Below, one piece after another: positions 33,951 to 53,367 of a DNA stretch of 64,000 nucleotides (its first letter is position 1; every line of letters starts with the position of its first letter). Below the pieces are notes generated by a model. It was not told the DNA's origin and ran no database searches. It worked only from the letters and a program-made list of their open reading frames with translations. The stretch lies in the sequence record NC_048668.1; one strand, 5' to 3'. The translations under genes were made by a program, and so were the position numbers.

Positions 33951-35512
33951 TTAGTGTGGTTGGAAGTCATTGATATCTTCGAATGATTGGTGCCAACCTG
34001 CGCCACCGCCCTCACTGGCAGTTTGTGCTCCAGGTTTCTTCATGGAGAGATCTTCCCCATCGATATCATCAGGAATACCGATTTCAGTAAAGCGATAAGT
34101 ACAACGTTGATGCTCTAACGGAGTGTTATCCACACCACGGTGTTTACCACGACCAATGTTGAGGTAAGCTACACCGTCAACGATTTTGTTTCTGAATGTT
34201 GATCTCCATGTCAACTTCTTGCGCGATCGTCTTACATTCGTTGTAGTACGCTCGGTTAAGAATTTCATTCAGGAACTGGTTAGGACGGTCACGTTCAATC
34301 GCAAGTGCTTCGGTAGACAACTGGTGAGGAGTAATGAACAGAACGTTGTGCAGTACCATGAAGTTACGAGTACGCTTGAACAACGCTTGTTTATCACGAC
34401 CGGTAATCCCGCCGTTATCGAAACCCTTAGTTGACATCATCGCCAGGTAGTCGAACGTACAGACAATAATCTCGTAGTTGTCTGCTTCCAAACCCAACAC
34501 CAAAGATTGCAGTGAATCGAAAGTGAACTCATCTGGGTTAATACGGAACATCAAGAAGTGCCAACCGTTCTCAGCAAACTTATCGTGCATATACTGAGCA
34601 GCTTCATTCGGATCAATATCCTTCAAAGCGATCGGACGACCAATGGTCGGTTCGATACATTGCTTGTACATGGTACGGATGTTGATCGGAAGGTCGTTCT
34701 CAGAAGAGATGAGTACGATAGCTGGTTTCTTATCCGGGTTCTGCAACTTAGGCTTGTTGTATAAAGCAGCCCCTTTGGTCATCATCATTGTCAGACCAGA
34801 TTTAAAGTGGTGTTGTAAACCACCTACAAGGATTGCCTCACCACGACGACCACCACCCTGTTCACCGAACATTCGGTTAAGGCCTTGTAGACCGAACTTG
34901 ATGATCTCTTCTTTAGATACCTGCTTCTTAGCTTTCTCAAACATGGCACGTACTGAGTCCACGTTTGTAAAGTCAACGAAGTCCATTACACCCGGAGCGT
35001 TCTGTGGAGAGTCATTCTTCTCCATGGCGTAATGTTCAAACTGGTTAACCATCGAACGAGCAATTTCGTTCAGTTCGAAGTCACCTTCTCCGTAGAGAAT
35101 CTTTTTGGTGTAATCTGCCAGCTTGAGTTTAAACTCTGACTTACGAGAAAACTCGTTCAAGTCCATGATCAATGTACGGCAATGACGTTTGATCGCCTCT
35201 TCATCCATCTTGGCGTTCAGACCTTGCTCTATCATGTCTATGATAGAAGGTTCTTCGCTAGCCAGGATACGGACGTTCTGAGAGATCAACTCTTTGCTCT
35301 GAGCCAAAGAAGGGTTAGCTGACATTTTTAGAATCAAGGTCTTCAGTGAGTTGAAGATCTCGATGGTTTGTTCTGTGTCAGATAAACCTTTCTCTACCTT
35401 AACATCTTTGAGGACACGCTTTACTAAACTCTTACTATCGCTACCCGCCTTAGCTTGGGTTTCCCAGTACAACAACATCAGAGCATTTACAATAAAGCAG
35501 TCGGTAGTTCAT
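33951..35512 (-). CDS. dnaB: DnaB-like replicative helicase (phiKZ gp118-like), with two probable single-base insertions (35494-35496, 34184-34187)
   Basis: AGAGGA RBS before ATG 35512 (MNYRLL/IVNALMLLYWE); Walker A variant GGLQHHFKSG; ISSEND; Walker B IVCTFDYLAMM; ITPHQLS; C-terminal YLNIGRGKHRG. Confidence 0.85.
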
Positions 35513-36253: not shown

Positions 36254-38542
36254 ATGGCAAGACCATCGAAAAGCGCACTGCGCGGCAACCTGACCAAAAA
36301 TCTGGTTGAGAAAATCCACAATGCGGTAATGCGCAACGTAAACAGCCTGGGCGAAGGCTCTGCCGCTGGCGTGATGTCCGTATCTCTGGAAAGCTACAAC
36401 GACCTGGGTGTTAACGCTGCTGACGTTGACAGCACCCTGGATAACCTGACCCAGGATCTGGCCGAAGCGCAAAGCGATGCGGTTGGTGCAGTAAACGCAA
36501 TCGAGCAAGGTCAGTCTGACGGCGCCATCGTTCATGGCGGCGAGTTCATCGAAGAGAACGGTAACAAAGTAGCTGTTGAAGCTGCCGCTGTTCTGGCGAT
36601 GTCCTTCAAAAACCCAGGCGCTTACTACAAGGACGGTTATTCTAACCCGGCCTTCGAAAGCGGCGTTATCGTCCACAACATGGTTTCCTCCGGTGCCAAC
36701 GGCGCCATCGCGACTCTGCCGGAAAGCAGCCGTCCGTCGTTCGAATCCTTCGACGAAAAAGAAACCGAAAAATGGCGTGAACACAGCTACGCTATCAACA
36801 TGATGGCCGCTAAACAGCACCCATTCGCTGAACTGTTCTACCGCACTCAGATCATCACTCCTGACCAAGCTGGCTTCGTAATGTCGATCCGCCGTAACAT
36901 GGTCTGGGAAACCTACCAGGGTACTGGTCTGAAAGGCGACGCCGTTAAATTCCAAAAACGTAACATCCTGCAAGGTCTGCTGGACTACACCGTTCTGGAA
37001 AGCAACAGCACCGAACTGATCCCGTGCATCCACACCGGCGAGAACGATGACCAGTTCATCGACCCGACCCTGGTTGCACCGCGCAAAGTTGTTCAGTCCA
37101 ACGAAGAGTTCGAAACCAACTACCTGAAATTCGGTGTTGGCTTCAACCTGCCAATGCTGGCACAGACTCCTTCTCGTCTGCAGAAAGGTTCTCCAACCTT
37201 CTCCGACTCTCTGGACAGCCGTATCGCGCTGAAAGATCTGCTGGTAACCGTTTCCAAAGGCGGCACCAAAGAAAACGTGAACTTCTTCGTGAACCGCGAC
37301 CAGTACGCCGCGTACACCGCAACTCGCGAATACAACTTCCGTCAAATGCAGCTGAAATTCCTGTCGACCGTTTCTGTTAACGCAGAAACCAAAACCGTTG
37401 AAGGCGCGGAATCCGCTAACCTGAAAGGTCTGATCGACGCTGGCTACAGCATGGAACTGGCTGTTGGTATCGACGGCGAAGTAAACGTTGAAACCGGCTC
37501 CGGCGAAACCTACGCACGTCCTCTGAAAATCGCTAAGATCTTCGACAAAGACGGCGTTGAAATCGCACTGTCCGACGCGCGCGTTGCCGCTCTGATCGCT
37601 GGCCTGACTTTCGAAGCTGCGGGTTACACCCTGGAAGCTCGTCTGACCAACATCAACCAACTGGAACTGGGCCTGGCAATCGACTCCGACGTGATGAAAC
37701 ACGGCTTCATGATCCCAACTCTGCCGCCGCTGGTTATCATCAAGCCGGCTCTGCAAGACGAAGAGAAAGTGTATCCGCGCATCGAAGCGCTGACCACTGC
37801 TTACCGTGTGCAGATGCGTAACAACGCAGTAACCACCCTGCTGAACCGCCGCGATACTCTGAAAGCCTACCTGGGCGTTGGCGTACCGCACCCGATCGAA
37901 TCTAACCAAGGCCTGGAAGGTGTCGGCCAATACTACGTGCGCCCGTACTACATGGAAGCCGAAGTAGATATCCTGAAAGATCTGAACAACCTGACCTCGG
38001 CTGCTAAGCAGACTGACATTCAGGGTCTGTTGGTTAGCAAGATCAACGAAATGGTTTACACCGCTGACCAGCTGACTGGTTACACCGCTGCTCTGGAAGC
38101 TGCCTTCCCAGGCCGTACTCCTAAGCCGCACGTAGCTATCGGTACCGACATGCGTCTGCCGCAGTACCTGCAGATTCCTGGCGACGACCGTACCGTTGGT
38201 ATTGGTTACGACTACACCATCGCTCGTATCTCCGACCTGCGCATGAAAGATCAGATCATCATGACCTTCGTGCTGCCGAACGTTGACGAGCCGCACCCGC
38301 TGCAGCACGGCGTACTGGGCCTGATTCCGGAATACCTGGTTAACTTCCAGATGATCCGTAACCAGCGCATCGGTAACGAAATCCGTCTGACTCCGCGCTA
38401 CCGTTACTTCAACTTCCTGCCGATCATGATGAGCATTACCGTCAAGAACCTGGAAGAAGCAATCGCGGCGCGTACTGCTCAAGCGAACGACGTTAAAGTC
38501 ACCAACGCTGCCGATTTCAAAGGCGACGCGTCTGGCGGTTGA
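36254..38542 (+). CDS. Major capsid protein precursor (phiKZ gp120-like), 762 aa
   Basis: Strongest codon bias in the window; SLE-S, AFE-S and SFE-S propeptide sites; QHPFAELFY and LTPRYRYFNFLPI motifs; helicase-gp119-MCP synteny. Confidence 0.9.
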   Translation: MARPSKSALRGNLTKNLVEKIHNAVMRNVNSLGEGSAAGVMSVSLESYNDLGVNAADVDSTLDNLTQDLAEAQSDAVGAVNAIEQGQSDGAIVHGGEFIEENGNKVAVEAAAVLAMSFKNPGAYYKDGYSNPAFESGVIVHNMVSSGANGAIATLPESSRPSFESFDEKETEKWREHSYAINMMAAKQHPFAELFYRTQIITPDQAGFVMSIRRNMVWETYQGTGLKGDAVKFQKRNILQGLLDYTVLESNSTELIPCIHTGENDDQFIDPTLVAPRKVVQSNEEFETNYLKFGVGFNLPMLAQTPSRLQKGSPTFSDSLDSRIALKDLLVTVSKGGTKENVNFFVNRDQYAAYTATREYNFRQMQLKFLSTVSVNAETKTVEGAESANLKGLIDAGYSMELAVGIDGEVNVETGSGETYARPLKIAKIFDKDGVEIALSDARVAALIAGLTFEAAGYTLEARLTNINQLELGLAIDSDVMKHGFMIPTLPPLVIIKPALQDEEKVYPRIEALTTAYRVQMRNNAVTTLLNRRDTLKAYLGVGVPHPIESNQGLEGVGQYYVRPYYMEAEVDILKDLNNLTSAAKQTDIQGLLVSKINEMVYTADQLTGYTAALEAAFPGRTPKPHVAIGTDMRLPQYLQIPGDDRTVGIGYDYTIARISDLRMKDQIIMTFVLPNVDEPHPLQHGVLGLIPEYLVNFQMIRNQRIGNEIRLTPRYRYFNFLPIMMSITVKNLEEAIAARTAQANDVKVTNAADFKGDASGG

Positions 38543-38593
38543 ACGCTCGCAGAGGCCTTTGAAGAAACCTTACCGGGTTTCGATCCGGCCTAG
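38543..38593 (+). other. In-frame 16-codon extension after MCP UGA (TLAEAFEETLPGFDPA-TAG); candidate readthrough segment
   Basis: Direct translation; lies inside the transcript before the terminator; peptide matches motifs in other virion proteins. Confidence 0.6.
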
Positions 38594-38608
38594 GCCACAA
38601 GCCAATAC

Positions 38609-38639
38609 ACCAGGGACCTTCGGGTCCCTGGTTTATTTT
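38609..38639 (+). terminator. Strong intrinsic terminator after MCP
   Basis: ACCAGGGACC-TTCG-GGTCCCTGGT then TTATTTT. Confidence 0.9.
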
Positions 38640-38671
38640 GCCCTATTTCCATATCGACTTAAGTTCATGTA

Positions 38672-38679
38672 TATATTAC
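38672..38679 (+). promoter_or_regulatory. Candidate early (vRNAP) promoter TATATTAC
   Basis: Exact match to the phiKZ early consensus, upstream of the operon containing the nvRNAP subunit. Confidence 0.55.
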
Positions 38680-38763
38680 TACCTTGGAGTTGTGATGGAG
38701 TCGCGATCCATTACTAAGTTCTAACAGATCTGTTTCAACAAATTCTATTGGGGTACCATTACC

Positions 38764-39801
38764 GTGACACTTAAGAAGAGCACATGGAGAACAAACAGTA
38801 CCATCCTGAACCCTAAACGGTTGGATGTACTGAATAAAGAACTGGAGGCATCTCAAGTAACAATCGAAGTACGCGTTGTTAACTTGTTGAACCACCCGGT
38901 TATGGTTAAAGAGAACAGCGGCAATCGTCATGTAGTAAATCCGAAGAACGTACCTGCTGCTGGTCGCTGTATTGCGATCAGTGTTGTATTTTCTTACGCC
39001 AACAGCTTAGTTAAAATTAACGCTGACCACGATTACTCTGAGGAGTACATTCACGATGTGCTCGAACGGTATAAGGGATTTGCTAGCGTCCATGTCGATG
39101 ACACGGATGTTTTCAATCGCTTTAATCGTAACTATTCTCGTCTGGTAATGGCTTTCGACGAGCGTAATCTGAAGTCCTTAGGTAATCTGCTGGAGATTGC
39201 AGAATGGGGTATTAGTATCGACTGTAGCAGAGATGCGGCGACTAGAACCCTAGAGTCTGAATTTATCGAGGCTCATTTACCGAATGTGAAACCCGATAAT
39301 GATTGTCGTTATAGTGGCGTATGTGTCACTTTAAACGATCCTGATAATCGGCTACCAAGAGCATTCTATCGGATTGGCAGTGAGGTATTCGAGATAGATC
39401 TAGATCGAACGGCCGGTTGTGAACCGGGCGTCGAGCTGGCTGCTTGGAACATCATGATGCCGTCGATGGTGCCGATGGAAGAAACTCGAATGAAGTTCTC
39501 TATCGACGAAGCATTGTCAGGGGAAAATCCATTGGGGTTGAAAGTATTCACATCTTTGGAAGAGGCTTATGCTTCTCCAGAAAACGAACTCAAACGAGTT
39601 AAGGACGAAGTAGCGAAAGAGAAAGTCAAACAGCGAGATGATAAGCGTACCAGTGTTCGAGAAGAAAAGCTGAAATTCGGTCATGGTATCCTTAAGATCT
39701 TTAATGAGGCCGTGAAGACTACGTTACCGATATTAGTGAGTTGGGGTGCCAAGTTGTTTGGTATCTTTAAACGTTCTTCTTCAATAATGGCTTTAATCTA
39801 A
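38764..39801 (+). CDS. Hypothetical protein (about 340 aa); true start may be ATG 38784 with an extra C at 38811-38813
   Basis: Clean ORF between MCP and nvRNAP gene; C-terminal coiled coil and amphipathic helix. Confidence 0.7.
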   Translation: MTLKKSTWRTNSTILNPKRLDVLNKELEASQVTIEVRVVNLLNHPVMVKENSGNRHVVNPKNVPAAGRCIAISVVFSYANSLVKINADHDYSEEYIHDVLERYKGFASVHVDDTDVFNRFNRNYSRLVMAFDERNLKSLGNLLEIAEWGISIDCSRDAATRTLESEFIEAHLPNVKPDNDCRYSGVCVTLNDPDNRLPRAFYRIGSEVFEIDLDRTAGCEPGVELAAWNIMMPSMVPMEETRMKFSIDEALSGENPLGLKVFTSLEEAYASPENELKRVKDEVAKEKVKQRDDKRTSVREEKLKFGHGILKIFNEAVKTTLPILVSWGAKLFGIFKRSSSIMALI

Positions 39802-44160: not shown

Positions 44161-46961
44161 TCAGGGTGGTGCCAGGTTGTCGCCTTCAGCATCTTGGAAC
44201 GGATCTTCGTTTGCACGGTCACCGCCAAATTCATCTTCACGACTACCGAAGTCATTACCGCCCAGGTCACCTTCTCCGAAGTCTTCGAACTCGTCTGAAC
44301 CCGTATCGAATTCTGAGTCACTGGAGCTATTGTCGCTACCCCAATCACTACCGCCTCCGAAACCGCCTTGGTTAGCGTTTTCAATTGCTTGACTCAAGTC
44401 AGGGTTAGTTTCCTTCGTAACTTCCAAGCGGTTCTCACGGAGCTGACGAATAACTGCAGCGGTGTCGCCCAGGTTATGTACCAGGTTAGCCATGTGCGCA
44501 TTCAGCTCTTTAGAGAAGTCAATCGCAGGGTTATCTTCGCTACCTACACGAGTCAGTTCACTCAGACCAAAGTCCATCCCCGTCTTAGCCAGGTACTCAC
44601 GTTTGAAGTAAGCGGCCACGTTAGCTTTGAGGTGATTGATCTTATCTTGGTCTTCGTCACCCAGAGATGGCCCGATGAGTTCTGGAGAGATGTAGTTCTC
44701 AACCATGTCATCAATCCATTGAGAGACTTTGTCGTATTCTTCTTTCTGGTTCTCGATCCGGTTAGATTCAGGACGAGGAAGTTCCAGATAAAGGACGCGG
44801 AAGAACTCTTCAATGGCATCGGTATATTGCAGTGAGTATGGGTTATCCATATCGTTGCAACGGTACTCTTCTGGGAGCTGGTCGTTGTGTTCACGGAAGA
44901 TCTCTTGGATGCGCCCAACCAACGTACCGTCAGACAAAGTATAAGACTTAACAAACTTCTTACCGTGTTTGCAAGTGTCATCCTGAATCATCATGATACG
45001 TTTTGCGTAAAGCTGGTTAGTTGTCCAGCGAGAGATAGCAAAGTCTGCCTGGGTAGTCATGTCCACCATTTCAGGTGGTTACGAACAGACCCATGTATTG
45101 CTGACGTTGCAATTCACGAGAGAACTCTGGATCGATTTGTTGACGTTGAGATTGGAACTCAGAAACATCGACTGTCGTGTTAGGCATACGCGGGTTACCT
45201 TGGACTTCAATAACCACACCCATGGAACGAATAACACGGAACATCTCAGCAGCAGACGTTACGTCTGTCGGAGTACCGCCAGCCTGTTGACGCATGAACT
45301 CATCGATCATGACGTGATACGCTTTGTCCGGATCAGGGTCACGAGGGTCAATGTTCATGGTAACTTTAGTACGGCCAACTGCGTTTTTAACCCCGGCCAT
45401 GAAGTTAGCAAAGGTTGTCATTGCACGCAGAGCGGATACTTGCTTGATGTCAATCCATCAGGGATTTACCCATGCCGTTCTTGTCGTAGTCGTATGCAAA
45501 GTACGCAACGTTCTCAACAGGTACGAATACCATGTGAGTACGCTGGTTAGCAAACTTACGGAACAGGAACAGACGCATGATATCTTCGTTCCAACCCAAC
45601 TTAACGTTACGGCCAAGCAAACCGTTTTTAATACGGTTAAGTACGTTCTCTTCCAGAACCTGGTCGAAGATACGTACACGCTCAGCGGCGTTAGTTTTAT
45701 CAGCATCGTAACAAAGACCGGAACCCAACATCTTAGTCTGTTGAATAAGTGAAGAGGTCTGGTTCATCTGACTATCGCCGTTAAGACCATTGTTACCGTT
45801 CTTAACAGCACGAGCGATCTCGTCGGTTACATCCAACGGGTGACCAAGTTCATCCAGGAGAATAATGTAGCCTAAGTGGTTGCGAGGCTCACCTTTAGGG
45901 AAGCACGGAATACAAGATTCACTTGGTACTTTAATAACCAGCGGGTGACCAATAGAAGAACGAGAAGCTTCAGCCGCCGTTGTCATTACCTTAACACGTT
46001 CCATCGCACTACCGTTGTCGCGATAGAGGCTGTTGGCAAGGGTGCGGATCTCCTTGATATGACCGTTACCGCCGCTAAAGGACTCGTTGGAAATACGAGT
46101 AGTCGAACGGAAAGAACGGTTCATTCGCTTCTGGTTGATCCGGTCACGAACCTTACCTAAACCGAGAACTGCAATGTTATCGGTAATGGTACACGCGTCG
46201 TTAATGCGCGTAGGTGTTTCACGGTCACCGGCTGGGTTCCAGAAGAAGTTTTCCATGCTAGGAGTGCTGACTTCGCGTCGCTTCTCTTTCTTGGCTTCTT
46301 CTTCAGTAAGACCTGGGTCGCCCAAGATACCTTTACCTGTATGTTTCAACGTACCGTCTTTAAACTGTGATGCAATGTGGGCCGCGTACATTTCGTCGGT
46401 CATTGCAGCAGATTCGTTAGAGACGCCGTTATAGGTACGGTCGTTGATGATATCGTCGATTACTGCTTCAGGAACGATAACGCCAATCCAAGCACCGTAG
46501 TCGAACAATGCTTCACCGATGATCTCCGGCAGTTTATCGCGGAGAGGGTAATAACCACCATCACCGAAATGTTCGCGGATAACTTCCGTGATTTCATTCA
46601 GTATAGTAGGACGAATTTCTGAATCTTCTGTTTTAAAGACCAGCTCGCCGTCGAACATGTCTACAGGAGAAAGGGTGGTGGAAATGATCATTTGTTTGAT
46701 CAGTTTCAAATCGCTACTCAGCTGCAGGATAGTTTCTGCATCCAAGTTCTTCTGAGCACGGTTTCCGACGATGTGGTCGAAAATAGTCTCATTATGTACC
46801 TTAACACCTTCACCCTGGCTATGATCACCGGTTAAATGGTCACGTACCATCTTCGTCATGATAGACGTGGCAGCAGGCGTATTTTCTAACCATTTCGTGG
46901 GTTTACTCCGAACACTCGTATCGGGACCACTACTGGTAAGAGTAGGTTTCTTCATTATCAT
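44161..46961 (-). CDS. Portal protein (phiKZ gp129-like), about 930 aa, split by probable insertions at 45452-45453 and 45079-45080
   Basis: Three consecutive ORFs join as KSLMD/DIKQVSALRAM and GLFV/PPEMVDM; HPLVIKVPSESCIP..GEPRNHLGYIILLDE.G motif; divergent from the baseplate gene. Confidence 0.75.
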
Positions 46962-47014: not shown

Positions 47015-49585
47015 ATGGCGGATACCACGCAACGATTGTACGTTGATGGCGCAATGAGTCTAGCGCAGACGATGACAATCAAGTTCAACGCCGGTGCGGT
47101 AGCGATCAACAATTATTTAACCGAAATAGGTTACACCGTTGACCCTAATGTTCCATCCACTTGGCGTTACTACATGAACCTTGCTGGCAAGTATCATGTC
47201 AGTAATCAGCAAATGAAAGTGACCTCCTTGGACACCTTGGAGGAGATTGACTTCACATATGATAACCTCTTAATCCACCGAGCTACTAAAGCAGCCTATA
47301 AGTACGGTTCCCGTTACTACAATGAACTTGTAGAACAATACCCAGAACAGGAATTGCTAATTAGGGGCGTTTTATGGCCAGTGGATATTGACAAGGCGAT
47401 TGATGCCAAGGACTTCACTATCCTTTATTACGATAGTGACGAGGTTGATCCCAATGAAACGTATTTGATCCAGGATCTCCAAGAATGGATTTACCGGTTT
47501 ACGTATCGTTGGTATCTAGTATTTGCTGCAGCTGTACAAAAATATTACCCGGCGACGTTTTTTGGGACTTTATTTATTCACCTGGTTGGCGAGATAATCA
47601 GTATTCGTGAGAACTATTGCCGTACTCAATACGTGCATAGCTATCACCTTTGGGCGTACCTTGGTTCACACGGTCGTCTGAATGCGTACAAGGATTACGT
47701 CAACATCACCCAGGCGTTGTGGTTGTACCGTAATATTCGCTACATCGATAACCACGCCGGTAAAACGACTACCTTCGATGATCTTATCCTTAATATCCTG
47801 ACAGCCCGTAACATCCCGCTGACAGCTTATTTCCTGCGCCATAACTCGAAGGATGTTCCTGAGTCTATTCTCCCTGAAGGGGAAGTAGCTAAGGATCCTA
47901 AGAACTACCTGGCAGAGTCCGTTCAAGGTATCGAACGAATCTCAATTGGGGAAGCTCTGGATAACGAAGTTAACTCGGCTAAGGATAACGATAAGTATCT
48001 GGCCAAGCAGAAAATCGATGTTCCTATTCGAGTCGCTAACGCCATTACCGGTGAGCTACCTACTAAGGTACTCGAGTCGGTCATGATTGACCGTTCAGAT
48101 TCTGTACCGCACAAGTTTGTTGATACGTTAATGGGTGAGTGGATCTATCTGGCGACTGAAGGTCGTTACGTAGCAAACATCACCATCCCTAACCCGGCTA
48201 CGCAAGAAGCCATGTCGATGACGGTAAGGGAAGCATTGATCCTTTGGGTCTACTGTGCGATGCGTCAGTTTGAAATGGTACTGGAAGACGTCCCTGATCT
48301 GACAGCCTGGTTTGTGCAACGTCTAGCGGCTCCTGAGTTCTCTGAACTGCGTGGTGTGTGCGAACCTAAGTATGTTAGTGAAGCGGCTATCTTGATGGCT
48401 CTGACTGAGCATACTCCGGTGTCTACTATTATCTCGACTGAAGCGTTCTACAACACTGTAGCTCAGATTCAAAGTAACATTAACGCCCATCGCGTCATGT
48501 ACACGCGTCAGCAAGACTTCCGTGCTCGTGGTCAGATGGAAGTGATGACCAATCGCTTTTACATCAACAAGAAATGTCAGTTGTCAGCCACACCGATTAA
48601 ATACGCAGACTGGTTCCACACCAAGAACTGGGATATGGAGTTGAGTTCCCCTGAAGCGTATTCCGATTTCTGTTTCCAGCTAATAGAAGTTGCAACGGGT
48701 GCTAACTTGCGCTCGACAATATCGGTGTCCGATGTACACAGCGCCATGATAGCGATCATGACTCAGCTGTCTAGTTACTCTGTACAGTACGTCCACAAAA
48801 CTAACGCATCTCCAAACATCATTGTTGATAACTTGGCGATTCGTTTCGGTGGCATTGAGTCTCGTCCTAGCGCTGACTTTAAAATTGACCAACGCGTTGA
48901 AATCATTAACCAGTACCAACGTGGTAAACTCTCTCCTGACAAGTCTGCATTTGAAGGGATTGAGATTGGCTCGAAGTATATTCATGCGCCACACTTCTAC
49001 CGTGTGTTCTCGTCCGTTGACTTCCTGCCAGATACCCATGTTGCTACTCGTCACCAGATTGAGATCGCTGAGGTTAGGTTCAAAGGTTCGCTTGCTAAAG
49101 ATATCGGTCTTGAGATCAGTAAACATGATCTTGACGGACTGTGGCTTTATCTGGCAACCGCTCGTCCAATTAACGAAGTCATCACTAACCCAAGGTTACC
49201 TGGGTTGTGGGTACGCGTACCTCGTGAAGATGAGTACTTACCTAACGAGATTACCAAAACCGATATTGAAGGACTGTGGACGAATGTTATCCCTGGCCCA
49301 GAGAAATTGGTCATTGGCAATAAACCACTCCCAGGTCTGTGGTTAGAGCCTATCGTTCCTTACGAGTTGGAAGACTTTAAAGAACGTCTCGAAGGTTTCG
49401 ATCCACCTGAACCATTTAAACCAACTACGTTGGCTGATGGTTTCGATGAGAATCTGGGTGGCTTCGTTGGGTACATTGAACCTGAGTTTGACCTCTTCAA
49501 TATAGAGGAAGAACTTCCTGGCTTCGATTCGCCTGATAGCGAACCAAAAGCACCTTACGATTTCTCTGCTTTGTTTGGCGAGTAA
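47015..49585 (+). CDS. Baseplate structural protein (phiKZ gp128/130-region-like), 856 aa, with C-terminal L-x-G-[LF] repeats
   Basis: WRYYMNLAGKYH, YPEQELLIRG, VHSYHLWAYLGSHG and QALWLYRNIRYI motifs; 7 terminal repeats. Confidence 0.7.
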   Translation: MADTTQRLYVDGAMSLAQTMTIKFNAGAVAINNYLTEIGYTVDPNVPSTWRYYMNLAGKYHVSNQQMKVTSLDTLEEIDFTYDNLLIHRATKAAYKYGSRYYNELVEQYPEQELLIRGVLWPVDIDKAIDAKDFTILYYDSDEVDPNETYLIQDLQEWIYRFTYRWYLVFAAAVQKYYPATFFGTLFIHLVGEIISIRENYCRTQYVHSYHLWAYLGSHGRLNAYKDYVNITQALWLYRNIRYIDNHAGKTTTFDDLILNILTARNIPLTAYFLRHNSKDVPESILPEGEVAKDPKNYLAESVQGIERISIGEALDNEVNSAKDNDKYLAKQKIDVPIRVANAITGELPTKVLESVMIDRSDSVPHKFVDTLMGEWIYLATEGRYVANITIPNPATQEAMSMTVREALILWVYCAMRQFEMVLEDVPDLTAWFVQRLAAPEFSELRGVCEPKYVSEAAILMALTEHTPVSTIISTEAFYNTVAQIQSNINAHRVMYTRQQDFRARGQMEVMTNRFYINKKCQLSATPIKYADWFHTKNWDMELSSPEAYSDFCFQLIEVATGANLRSTISVSDVHSAMIAIMTQLSSYSVQYVHKTNASPNIIVDNLAIRFGGIESRPSADFKIDQRVEIINQYQRGKLSPDKSAFEGIEIGSKYIHAPHFYRVFSSVDFLPDTHVATRHQIEIAEVRFKGSLAKDIGLEISKHDLDGLWLYLATARPINEVITNPRLPGLWVRVPREDEYLPNEITKTDIEGLWTNVIPGPEKLVIGNKPLPGLWLEPIVPYELEDFKERLEGFDPPEPFKPTTLADGFDENLGGFVGYIEPEFDLFNIEEELPGFDSPDSEPKAPYDFSALFGE
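49120..49540 (+). repeat. Seven protein-level repeats (D/P/E-L-x-G-[LF]-W/D)
   Basis: HDLDGLWLY, PRLPGLWVR, TDIEGLWTN, KPLPGLWLE, ERLEGFDPP, ENLGGFVGY, EELPGFDSP. Confidence 0.8.
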
Positions 49586-49651: not shown

Positions 49652-50491
49652 ATGGCAAACGCGAATTACTACAATAAGCCCACTAACCGATTAGTCTTTG
49701 ACTTGATCAAAGAAGCTAACCCGGAAGCGGACTTCTCAGAAGATCAAGTAAGGTTAACGAACTTTACCCAGAACACCAATGGCGACCCGTTACGTAACAC
49801 CGCAGGTATTCTGAAAGCAATCCCTGGCATGGGCCGTGAAGGTCAAGAGAACCTGACCTGGAACCGTCCTGCACTGAACGAGATCTTTAAAGAGATCAGC
49901 GTTTACTGTTCTCCTAACGGTAAGTTCAAGAAATCTGACTTACTGAAAGAAATCAACAGTAACTATAACTTCCAGCTGGACGCCGGTGATATTTACGACG
50001 GTGTACTGAACCTGTCAACTCTACCGACCAAAACGGTTATCGTGGTACGTCCTACCTGTCCTGCTTTTACTGGTCAGTTAGAGATTACCATTGGTGATCC
50101 TAAGATCGCTCTGGAGACGGTTATTCGTAACCCTGACCTGGATGGCCTGGCTTACCCTACCAACCAGTCTGAGAAGATCCAAGGTCCCCTGTACATGTAT
50201 GCCAATGACTACACGTACGATGCCACTGGTCTTCAGCAGTTTGGTTACGGCGATCCTATCCAAGGCGAACTCCTGGAAAGCCTCAACCGTAAATCGCCAG
50301 ACACCTGGGTACTGAAACCTACCCCTGCTCCGTGGAACGCTAACGGTGCTGACGTATGGTACAATGGCCCGACTGCTCAGGCTCCGGTATACGTGAACAC
50401 TTCGTACCAGCGTTGCTTGGTTATCCACCTGGATAAAGAGTATTGCTCTAACGTTGCCGGTCACTTGATCCTGCATTACAACATGCCATAA
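49652..50491 (+). CDS. Virion structural protein (279 aa), beta-rich N-domain plus NPDLDGLAYP linker
   Basis: GGAG RBS; two domains separated by the shared motif; TATG at 49609 upstream. Confidence 0.7.
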   Translation: MANANYYNKPTNRLVFDLIKEANPEADFSEDQVRLTNFTQNTNGDPLRNTAGILKAIPGMGREGQENLTWNRPALNEIFKEISVYCSPNGKFKKSDLLKEINSNYNFQLDAGDIYDGVLNLSTLPTKTVIVVRPTCPAFTGQLEITIGDPKIALETVIRNPDLDGLAYPTNQSEKIQGPLYMYANDYTYDATGLQQFGYGDPIQGELLESLNRKSPDTWVLKPTPAPWNANGADVWYNGPTAQAPVYVNTSYQRCLVIHLDKEYCSNVAGHLILHYNMP

Positions 50492-50626: not shown

Positions 50627-51160
50627 ATGGCACGTATCGCGTTTAACCCGGCAAACTCTGCCGATGATGAATTCACTCGTCTCCTGGTAAATGGTACTAC
50701 CATCCCAGAGCTGAAAGCAGTTAAGCTGACCACTGATTACACTGTAACCACCCCTGCCGCCGCTAACACCGGTGAGAAAGATGGTAACACCGTTATCGGC
50801 CTGACCCCTGCGGCTGGCAGTAAACTGCTGAAAGGCGACGCACGTGAGTTCTACTACGATCGTCTGAGCATCGCTTCTGAACTGACCCGTAAAGCAGTTA
50901 ACCTGAAGTCTGCTGACGCACTGACCCCGGCTAACCGTGACGCGTTCGCCCTGACCTGCGTAAAAGCAGTTTGGGACAAATTCGTTGCTGCTGACGTCGT
51001 GTTCAAAGAAGACAAAACTGAAGGCGAAGTTGTAGCGTACGTCTACACTATCAAAGCCGACAACAAAGTCTTCAACGGCGAATTCACTATCACTTCCGGC
51101 GACCAGACTCTCCAGTCCTTCAGCGAGAACCTGGGCGGCTTTGACGCACCGGCTGCGTAA
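50627..51160 (+). CDS. Highly expressed small virion protein (177 aa), candidate decoration/fibre subunit
   Basis: AAGGA RBS before ATG 50627; MCP-like codon bias; own terminator; ends TLQSFSENLGGFDAPAA. Confidence 0.7.
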   Translation: MARIAFNPANSADDEFTRLLVNGTTIPELKAVKLTTDYTVTTPAAANTGEKDGNTVIGLTPAAGSKLLKGDAREFYYDRLSIASELTRKAVNLKSADALTPANRDAFALTCVKAVWDKFVAADVVFKEDKTEGEVVAYVYTIKADNKVFNGEFTITSGDQTLQSFSENLGGFDAPAA

Positions 51161-51262: not shown

Positions 51263-52202
51263 ATGAGCGCAAGTACTAATACCAACTTGATTACGCGCAC
51301 TGTTCTTAGTGGGATGCTGCAAACGTGTTTGCTGGCAGGTATCCCGTTAACAGTTCTGGATTATACGACGCTCAATCAGCGTCTGGGTATTAACGAAGAT
51401 GCTAAGTTGGCATCTAACGAAATGCCTACCTTCGGTTACTGGTGCATCGGTGACAAAGGTCACTGGGTTGTCCCTACTTCCGATGGCGAAGTTATTATCG
51501 AACCAGCTGAACATACCGCCGGTGACTTCGCCCCGTTCAACATGATTCCGTTTGTCATGCGTGAAGAGTCTAACGACCTGTCTGTAGAAGAGCGTAAGAA
51601 GTACGGCCTTCGTAAATCAGAGAACCGCAACGGGATCAACTATTTCTCTTACTACGCCAAGGCCATCGACCTGACTGGTAAGAAGCCGCGTATGGAACGT
51701 ACTACCGTGAAAGACGGCGTTGCGACCACTACCGAATACACGCCGAACAACTCCAACCTGTATCCTGAGCGTAAAACTCTGACGACCAACGAAGCCGTCA
51801 CTACCAACTCCGATACTCTGACCGTTTCGTTGACTACTGATTGTACTGTTCGACGACAACGACGTTAAAGAGCTGAACAACGTATCTCGCATCCTGTACG
51901 GTAACGAGAAGCGTGCAATCATCTCTGAGATCGCATTGGTATCAGCATTCAAACGTGTTGTACAGGCTCCCGGTCCTGGCGGCGGTGCTATCTCTATCAC
52001 CGAAGCGATCTGTGCCCAGGTACTGACCTTCTTGTCTACTTATCGTCAGATGTCCTTCGACAACCGCGGTTTCGTTATTACTCTGGAAATGGGTGCTAAC
52101 GAACCGATGATGACATCCGACGCGGTAGGTACCAGCTCAGGTCGAGACGCCGTTCAAAACGCACGTCAGTTGTTCTCTGCGAATATCGCACCACGCGCTT
52201 AA
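51263..52202 (+). CDS. Conserved virion structural protein (phiKZ gp139-like), about 312 aa, split by a probable extra T at 51841-51842
   Basis: YTTLNQRLGI, FGYWCIGDKGH, PFVMRE.SNDL, YFSYYAKAID; removing one T gives LTTDVLFDDNDVKEL...RAIISEIALVS. Confidence 0.65.
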
Positions 52203-52218: not shown

Positions 52219-53367
52219 ATGAGTACTATCTTTGGCCACGATACCATCAAGGCTGAAGTTATCGATTTAATCAATAAGAAGAATGCTCAGTTTGGTGCAG
52301 ACTTTACCGAGGACAACCTCGAAGTCACGTGGCTCAGCTACGATGCATTAGACCGTCGTCAAACGATGATGACGAAAGATCTTTCTGGTCGATACTTTGG
52401 TTTACGTGATATCCGCTTCTTCAAACGCGATTACGATCTCCTCTTTAAAGGGATCGACGTAAAGATCCAGGTAGGTTCAGGCTACAACAACCGCGCGGTG
52501 CTCAAAGAGCTTTCTCGTGCATACGGGTTACCTCCATTCGAAGATTACGACTTTGCTCCAGGTCTACTGGACATGTCTATCGAAGTAGGTGACCACGAGC
52601 AATTGATCGAATGGCCATTTGCTGACTCCAGCTGGGGTTGGACAGGGACTTGTCGATTCAAGCTCCGTAACATGAAGACCTCGCTGGAAACGCTTATTCC
52701 AGACGGTACATTGGATCGATTCCATCCAGAAGAGCTGAAAGGCGTCTTCTACGAATTGGTCAACGGTACGTTGAGTGGATTGGATTACCCAGAATACTTC
52801 GACCTTGGTAAGATCATTACGATCACCGATCTCGAAGGTTTGGAATACCCAGACGATATCGACTTGGGTGTTATTATCCATACCACAGATCTGGAAGGTC
52901 TGGAATATCCGCCGATGACTGACATCAGCAAGTTCCAAACTAGCGATCTCCAGGGCTTGGAATACCCTCCTGCTTACGACTTGACTAAACTCAATGTCTT
53001 TGCATTGGCCGGTCTGGATTATCCAAGTGGTACTGGCGCAGGTCAAACTTCTGCGTACAGCACGACCTACCCGCTGGACTTCTCTGATTACCAACGTGCA
53101 ATCCGTACTTATCGTTTAGGCGATACGATCACGGACGTTAACTTGGTGAACGTCATTGTTAGCATGATCCAGTCTAACTGGACTAAGCTGCAGGGTGAGA
53201 CTAACAAGTCTAACCTCTTTAACTCCTTCTTGAATGCGACCATCCAGAGCATTGAACAGAAACGTTCGATCCATGGTTGGACTATTTCGGTCGGCGTTAA
53301 GTTGAGTTCTCAACGCGTACTTCGCGGCAATGCCGTGCTGCGTTACGACATCCAATCTGAATATTAA
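52219..53367 (+). CDS. Virion structural protein (382 aa) with five L-x-G-L-[DE]-Y-P repeats
   Basis: AAGGAG RBS; repeats at about 19-20 aa spacing. Confidence 0.75.
   Translation: MSTIFGHDTIKAEVIDLINKKNAQFGADFTEDNLEVTWLSYDALDRRQTMMTKDLSGRYFGLRDIRFFKRDYDLLFKGIDVKIQVGSGYNNRAVLKELSRAYGLPPFEDYDFAPGLLDMSIEVGDHEQLIEWPFADSSWGWTGTCRFKLRNMKTSLETLIPDGTLDRFHPEELKGVFYELVNGTLSGLDYPEYFDLGKIITITDLEGLEYPDDIDLGVIIHTTDLEGLEYPPMTDISKFQTSDLQGLEYPPAYDLTKLNVFALAGLDYPSGTGAGQTSAYSTTYPLDFSDYQRAIRTYRLGDTITDVNLVNVIVSMIQSNWTKLQGETNKSNLFNSFLNATIQSIEQKRSIHGWTISVGVKLSSQRVLRGNAVLRYDIQSEY
52760..53030 (+). repeat. Five tandem about 19-20 aa repeats ending L-x-G-L-[DE]-Y-P
   Basis: TLSGLDYP, DLEGLEYP, DLEGLEYP, DLQGLEYP, ALAGLDYP. 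Confidence 0.85.

Follow-up and report, generated by a model that had tools for sequence, protein, structure and literature searches.

Recoded minor capsid proteins are known in a few small phages, and none has been described for the phiKZ-like jumbo phages, despite several solved capsids. In phage Qbeta, the coat gene ends in a leaky UGA, at which occasional readthrough gives rise to A1, whereby a few coat subunits are extended and acquire an added function. In T7 and T3 (gene 10B), in Lactobacillus phage A2 and in the Listeria phages A118, A500 and PSA, minor capsid proteins are made by frameshifting (PMC5009743). The present work deals with the 3' end of the gene for the major capsid protein (MCP) in a stretch of 64,000 nucleotides from record NC_048668.1 (the window, on whose single strand, 5' to 3', positions are given), which derives from Serratia phage vB_SmaM_2050HW, hereafter 2050HW. 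The gene ends in UGA, a short in-frame peptide follows, and both are kept in relatives; recoding at this stop probably yields a minor, extended form of the MCP.

The likeness to Qbeta A1 lies in the UGA of a capsid gene, the occasional readthrough and the small number of extended subunits, the last two of which are predicted for 2050HW from its sequence. Qbeta, however, is a small single-stranded RNA phage whose coat has an unrelated fold and whose extension is a long, folded domain, whereas 2050HW is a double-stranded DNA jumbo phage with a T=27 capsid of the HK97 fold, and the extension is a peptide motif of 16-55 residues across its relatives. With the T7 10B type, the present system would have in common a tailed double-stranded DNA phage and a sub-stoichiometric, recoded C-terminal extension of the MCP, and three relatives of 2050HW (L043, L048 and L049) appear to use the same route; in 2050HW itself, by contrast, the extension lies in frame behind the UGA and requires no slippery site. 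The known frameshift extensions are, moreover, mostly Ig-like domains or lack a known partner, whereas here the extension is a short motif common to the phage's own baseplate and fibre proteins. Full-text literature searches returned no report of MCP recoding for jumbo phages. What would be new is UGA readthrough in the HK97-fold MCP of a tailed double-stranded DNA phage, an exchange between readthrough and frameshifting among members of a single gene family, and a short motif for which a candidate partner can be named.

This candidate partner belongs to a third system, the DUF7941 proteins (gp22 and gp23 in Escherichia coli phage Goslar, gp126 and gp127 in phiKZ). A cryo-electron microscopy (cryo-EM) preprint on Goslar puts gp22 at ~580 and gp23 at 2,140 copies per virion, all of them left unmodelled, and reports that purified gp22 forms filaments (10.64898/2026.04.21.720040). 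In its AlphaFold 3 predictions, the DUF7941 subunits join head to tail, each receiving on its N-terminal domain the disordered linker of the one before it, and the fibre cloud is proposed to be anchored at six baseplate sites (10.64898/2026.04.21.720040). Taken together, ~2,700 DUF7941 subunits per virion and six proposed anchoring sites would imply filaments of ~3 micrometres. Readthrough, the stop codon, a sequence motif and an MCP extension are all unmentioned in the preprint (10.64898/2026.04.21.720040).

The end of the major capsid gene in phage 2050HW

A megablast search with positions 36254-38700 matched 2050HW (MF285618.1) at 100% with unchanged coordinates, and BUCT660 and Pectobacterium phage ParM-25 likewise at 100%; the identity was 98% for the Moabite group, 86% for Totoro and ~77% for the Klebsiella phiKp24 group. 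With its 276-kb genome, 2050HW is a phiKZ-like myovirus and belongs to the genus Moabitevirus. The elements at the end of its MCP gene are the following (aa, amino acids; evidence in brackets).

36254..38542, + strand: MCP gene, 762 aa, 2050HW_00039 (PF25620 PhiKZ_MCP, phrog_3231 and PDB matches)
38540..38542, + strand: UGA stop of the MCP, next base A; proposed leaky stop (sequence, comparison with relatives)
38543..38590, + strand: 16-codon in-frame extension, TLAEAFEETLPGFDPA, with a docking-type motif (translation; kept in Moabite, Totoro and L038)
38591..38593, + strand: second stop, TAG, which ends the extension (sequence)
38609..38640, + strand: intrinsic terminator, a 10-bp G+C-rich hairpin (38609-38632) and a T tract (terminator annotation in Moabite)

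The identity of the gene product is clear from its coverage of positions 2-634 of the 635 in the PF25620 PhiKZ_MCP profile (E=4e-228), its assignment to phrog_3231 and its PDB matches, which include the solved MCP of phiKp24 (8bfl, E=4e-278) and phiKZ gp120 (8y6v). Just 5' of the stop, the protein has a tail rich in Gly, Pro and Thr that is variable among homologues. The open reading frame (ORF) closes with GGC GGT TGA, the TGA occupying 38540-38542, and the 16 sense codons and the TAG that follow it, ahead of the terminator, are exactly as described in the original prediction, which had proposed readthrough of the UGA from the letters of this DNA. A UGA followed by A, a leaky type of stop in a leaky context, is thus found directly 5' of an in-frame open extension.

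The extension has the pattern hydrophobic-x-x-x-F-x-E-x-L-x-G-F-D. In its strict form, this motif is found three times when the window is translated in all six frames, ~0.05 occurrences being expected (an estimate from residue frequencies). A looser form, sought in the whole 276-kb genome, falls within real genes solely in the 856-aa gp47 and the 177-aa gp49. Sixteen open codons 3' of a stop are nothing unusual by themselves; what exceeds chance is that stop and peptide are both kept in relatives. As for the stop itself, TAA closes 186 of the 282 long ORFs in the 2050HW genome, TGA 69 and TAG 27, and the most frequent TGA context is TGA-T (28 of 69). In E. coli, according to what Poole and Tate reportedly found, UGA-C is the weakest termination signal, and U after the stop is the strongest context.

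Stop and peptide among the relatives

The 3' ends of MCP genes were gathered from GenBank phages, IMG/VR, JGI metagenomes and Logan assemblies; scans of IMG/VR and of the JGI metagenomes with the MCP gave few loci, and exact-protein look-ups in Logan supplied most of the relatives. The motif stands in frame directly 3' of the MCP stop in 18 sequences, namely four Moabitevirus types; PhiEaH1 with two relatives; and PCH45, L018, SPLA10, Goslar, L021, L047, L011, L026, L019, L046 and L045. In all 18 of them the stop is TGA; C follows it nine times, A seven times, G twice and T never, and the extension is 16-55 codons long.

Close to 2050HW, three GenBank records are 100% identical across the stop, and L038, a Logan contig with an MCP region 91% identical, has the same arrangement. 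Moabite has TGA and a 16-codon extension in which 11 codons differ from those of 2050HW, six of them synonymously, and Totoro has TGA and a third version of the extension. The arrangement also reaches distant genera, since TGA and the in-frame motif occur in PhiEaH1, PCH45, SPLA10, Goslar and at least eight metagenomic lineages. The identity of the MCP to that of 2050HW falls to 46-56% in such metagenomic lineages, and to 28% across the C-terminal 262 residues in Goslar. Translation through the MCP stop in related phages, the check proposed along with the original prediction, thus finds stop and extension conserved down to Goslar. The identity of the stop tracks the arrangement: in the ten close relatives that lack the peptide or have it in the -1 frame, the stop is TAA in nine, as against TGA in 18 of 18 (Fisher p ~1e-6, a hand calculation that ignores shared ancestry).

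The way in which the extension varies is that of a coding sequence. In the first 16 extension codons of eight diverged sequences of the PCH45 type, 7, 7 and 12 of 16 sites are variable at codon positions 1, 2 and 3, respectively. In the columns of conserved Leu, Glu, Ile, Phe, Asp, Val, Gly and Pro, almost all change is synonymous, and one of the Leu columns contains as many as five codons for Leu. The corresponding numbers of variable sites in the Moabitevirus set are 5, 2 and 10, and its pairwise codon differences comprise 26 synonymous and 20 non-synonymous changes. Since the conserved residues are kept in different synonymous codons, the stretch is under selection as protein. Given the variable Gly/Pro/Thr tail before the stop, the sequence 3' of the stop is conserved better than the sequence 5' of it. 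Some 30 residues past the docking motif, the long extensions have a further block that is conserved, T-[ED]-x-G-x-[PS]-I-x-[LMT]-E, which was found in L033, L018, L021, L047, L034 and the -1 frame of L043 and L048; it points to an additional binding site or to a small fold.

Three lineages (L043, L048 and L049) keep the peptide by another route. Their MCP stop is TAA, and the motif lies in the -1 frame, beginning right at the stop. L043 and L048, which come from different sequencing runs, have the heptamer C_CCA_AAG (zero-frame CCA and AAG) two codons 5' of the TAA, and differ from each other at this slippery site by a single change that is synonymous in both frames. L049 has A_AAA_AAG (zero-frame AAA and AAG) one codon 5' of the TAA. 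Both heptamers are named as highly shift-prone in E. coli (PMC5009743), and that of L049 is identical to the heptamer of dnaX-type -1 frameshifting in E. coli, a likeness that concerns the relatives and not the window, where the extension lies in frame 0 and does not take the -1 route. The -1-frame loci are at about 2860-2990 in L043, about 2866-3000 in L048 and about 2950-3030 in L049, and a fourth is at about 2900-2970 in L044. The case for UGA readthrough is thus strengthened by the constant TGA with its in-frame peptide, by the variation at third codon positions and by the -1 route in three lineages.

In a neighbour-joining tree of the MCP, the frameshift lineages group together. The phiKp24 clade, L039 and L041, the MCP 3' ends of which were examined and have no extension, form one clade beside Moabitevirus, and Goslar, with its readthrough arrangement, is the outgroup. 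The simplest history would start from an old readthrough arrangement, which changed to frameshifting once or twice and was lost once. The exchange of readthrough and frameshifting in one gene family would mean that selection keeps a low dose of the extended form rather than a particular mechanism.

A different family of extensions was observed in the Pseudomonas phiKZ-like phages SL2, PhiPA3 and 201phi2-1, in which the MCP TGA is followed by a conserved in-frame extension of 27-30 codons (L053 1174-1260, L059 1198-1295 and L060 1177-1265) that starts with GKG, contains two R-Y-x-E-x-G units and ends with A-R-x-L. In Ralstonia phage RP12 (L054, about 1195-1245), the MCP TGA is followed by A and a 15-codon extension with D-G-F, which matches the docking motif weakly and uncertainly.

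Motif-level similarity to DUF7941 and baseplate wedge proteins

The other proteins of the window that carry the motif or the DUF7941 domain are the following.

47015..49585, + strand: gp47, baseplate wedge protein, 856 aa, homologue of phiKZ gp128 and Goslar gp35 (PDB match, phmmer)
49652..50491, + strand: gp48, full-length DUF7941 protein (PF25613 E=8e-81; weak PDB match to PHIKZ127)
50627..51160, + strand: gp49, 177 aa, DUF7941 N-terminal domain and motif tail, counterpart of Goslar gp23 (weak DUF7941 match, phmmer)
52219..53367, + strand: gp52, DUF7941 protein, Goslar gp22-like (PF25613 E=6e-22; phmmer to Goslar gp22 E=3e-9)

The original prediction had aligned the extension with peptides from the 856-aa protein and from the C-terminal end of the 177-aa protein, and both proved to be present, the former in several copies in the tail. 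Thus, gp47 matches PHIKZ128 (PDB 9xqs, E=3e-110, residues 7-599) and Goslar gp35 (phmmer E=1e-119), and its phiKZ homologue gp128 is a baseplate wedge protein (phiKZ atlas, PMC13250141). The conserved part of gp47 stops near residue 613, and the remainder is a C-terminal tail in which three copies of the motif are matched by a regular expression and a fourth, looser copy reads L-x-G-F (about 49376-49528). Among 74 homologues of gp47, the tails consist of repeated L-x-G-[F/L/W] units, often with the full motif as their end; those of the phiKp24 clade are likewise of this repeat type, although the MCP extension is absent there.

In gp49, the last 17 residues (51107-51157) carry the motif, and this tail is kept in homologues; in an AlphaFold2 model, it is disordered, with a predicted local distance difference test (pLDDT) score below 50. 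The ORF of gp49 opens at TTG 50573 (195 aa), whereas the record and all homologues start at ATG 50627 (177 aa), a form that fits the alignment. Its phmmer match to Goslar gp23 has E=4e-4, and a HMMER search of 1.84 billion representatives returned only three real relatives. A related motif occupies the inter-domain linker of gp48 (residues 154-166, about 50111-50149), and gp52 has three linker-type copies past its N-terminal domain, at residues 177-228. The DUF7941 domain is found in two further 2050HW proteins beyond the window. In gp48, gp52, Goslar gp23 and the paralogues of PhiEaH1 and PCH45, the motif comes directly after the N-terminal domain, at PF25613 positions of about 152-175, and the MCP extension is similar, at the level of a short motif, to this linker or tail segment.

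The match is closest in Goslar, where the MCP extension and the phage's own gp23 tail are nearly the same, with 9 of 14 aligned residues identical, including a run ending DNVADGF; with the tails of other phages, at most 4 are identical. The MCP extension of PhiEaH1 has 7 of 14 residues identical to a peptide of its own phage and 4 to those of other phages; for that of 2050HW, the corresponding numbers are 6 of 14 (a gp47 segment, counted by hand) and at most 4, so that the best match lies within the same genome in three of the four phages compared. Such own-genome matching is expected if all of the peptides fit one groove of a co-evolving protein. The original prediction had seen in the extension an anchor for fibres or decoration proteins, and for this idea the DUF7941 filament proteins may now be named as a concrete candidate partner.

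Between gp49 and gp52, at 51263-52202, are two adjacent ORFs of 201 and 88 aa, each with a match to Goslar gp32, which is the spoke protein and a homologue of phiKZ gp139; the pair may represent a single split gene or two paralogues.

Proposed mechanism and rival explanations

On the reading that we favour, most ribosomes would terminate at the MCP UGA and a few percent would read through it, most likely by mis-reading of UGA by tRNA-Trp in competition with release factor 2, so that the inserted residue would probably be Trp. Readthrough would add 16 residues and end at the TAG. The extended and the normal MCP would then co-assemble, giving some tens of extended copies in a capsid of ~1615 subunits. 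The figure of 1615 MCP copies is that of the phiKp24 capsid, in which the C-terminal loops of the MCP twist together into a pore at the centre of the hexamer (PMC9700779). As these loops meet at the hexamer centre and the extension comes after the short, variable Gly/Pro/Thr tail, it would hang from the centres of the capsomers as a flexible peptide. In Goslar, a C-terminally GFP-tagged MCP forms puncta in infected cells, like other capsid-associated proteins (10.64898/2026.04.21.720040).

The extension could then recruit the N-terminal domain of a DUF7941 protein and start a filament on the head. Since its motif is that of the gp49 end, the DUF7941 linkers and the gp47 tail, the extended MCP would anchor filaments on the head and gp47 would anchor them on the baseplate. 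This anchoring role is put forward tentatively, with clearly less assurance than the recoding. It departs from the Goslar preprint, where anchoring is solely on the peripheral baseplate and the docking is an AlphaFold prediction. The fibre cloud would encircle the head as well as the baseplate, and anchors on the head, together with several per wedge protein, would alter the picture of the Goslar filaments. A conserved leaky stop would also mean that one component is missing from virion models and proteomic databases. A wider proposal, which we consider possible and hold with similar reserve, is that recoding at the MCP end is general in the nucleus-forming jumbo phages, the Chimalliviridae, by UGA readthrough in most lineages and -1 frameshifting in some, with at least two families of peptides, of which the enterobacterial/Goslar type would plant DUF7941 anchors on the capsid.

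Several observations weigh against these proposals. No extended MCP species has been reported, and the Goslar and phiKZ structure papers are silent on one. The chimalliviruses RAY, SPN3US, RSL2, Xoo-sp14, pVa-21 and KpHz_2 have TAA and no extension, which, together with its absence from the phiKp24 clade, implies that it is dispensable in some lineages. In L044, the peptide is in the -1 frame without a canonical heptamer, a run of G being a possible slip site. The own-genome preference of PCH45 is marginal, with 7 identities to its own wedge tail versus 6. A Pfam scan of six extension peptides alone returned no match, the likeness to DUF7941 being that of a short motif, and the AlphaFold2 model of gp49, made from a 7-sequence alignment, has a mean pLDDT of 61.5 and is uninformative on docking. 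The C-terminus at the hexamer pore, finally, may point outward or inward.

This last point, and the shortness of the motif, would equally suit an extension that is translated and serves something else, for instance a different partner while heads are assembled or trafficked (scaffold, protease or portal, or a docking event at the phage nucleus or within virion bouquets), or one that caps DUF7941 filaments or competes with them. The extension motif of the Pseudomonas phiKZ-like phages was sought in the gp126-128 homologues of SL2 and was not found there, and the extensions thus need not all serve DUF7941. Yet the extension of each genome is closest to the DUF7941 tail or wedge tail encoded alongside it, and in the 2050HW genome the motif is confined to baseplate and fibre proteins; another role seems somewhat less probable. 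Far less probable is that the stretch is not translated at all and is kept as RNA or DNA, whether as part of the terminator, as a stability element or as a regulatory site. The terminator does lie directly downstream, and the 2050HW copy folds into a small hairpin of 6-7 bp (38563-38582). A comparable stem, with one pair changed, can form in Moabite and Totoro, and other clades are without it; in none of Moabite, Totoro, PCH45 and PhiEaH1 is this hairpin a significant fold. The folds of the 57-61 bases 3' of the stop in five relatives have z-scores of -0.3 to -2.2, are no better than shuffles in four of the five and share no structure, and Rfam gave no match in 38300-38800 at E up to 1. The concentration of variation at third codon positions, with its many synonymous changes and even switches between the Leu codon families, also argues against such a role, as do the TAA lineages, which keep the peptide in another frame behind slippery heptamers.

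Slightly more remote again is a separate small product made by re-initiation, or a UGA that is read as selenocysteine or by a suppressor of the phage. UGA is a selenocysteine codon, and CTG or CTA stands directly after the stop in many relatives; however, the extension peptide lacks a ribosome-binding site and any start codon (ATG, GTG or TTG), it opens directly at the stop in every case, and the frameshift lineages join it to the MCP frame without the use of a UGA. Selenocysteine was further rejected for want of an Rfam match resembling a selenocysteine insertion sequence (SECIS) and of a hairpin common to the relatives. A suppressor tRNA was rejected on the ARAGORN result, which for the whole 276-kb genome gave only tRNA-Tyr (GTA) and no UCA anticodon, and a reassigned UGA on the ordinary use of TGA as a stop, which ends 24% of the long ORFs (69/282). 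The original prediction had itself allowed for a paired insertion and deletion in the assembly, in which case every MCP would carry the peptide. Its remark on the error profile was apt, in that several 2050HW genes are annotated in pieces where the relatives have single genes; the MCP stop is not such a case. The TGA is found in the three identical records, the Logan contig, Moabite and its relatives, Totoro and the distant genera, and thus recurs across assemblies made independently and in lineages whose flanking sequence differs, and the motif is fused to the annotated product in none of 46 database MCP homologues, which for practical purposes excludes an artefact. Readthrough of a genuine UGA is thus retained as the preferred reading for 2050HW.

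Gene breaks were observed elsewhere in the window. A DnaB-like helicase (33951-35478) is in two pieces, with one break, in 2050HW and is a single coding sequence (CDS) in Moabite, and the homologue of Goslar gp36 (44161-46961) is in three pieces, with two breaks, where L038 has a single gene of 926 aa. Elsewhere in MF285618.1, runs of neighbouring CDSs that bear one name, those for SbcC, RNA polymerase beta, ligase, transglycosylase, RpoBC and helicase, suggest further breaks. Beyond the terminator of the MCP gene, at 38665-38690, lies an A+T-rich block with TATATTAC, conserved at the equivalent position in Moabite, Totoro, phiKp24 and many metagenomic relatives; it carries a promoter annotation in phiKp24 and is probably a phage-type promoter for the next gene.

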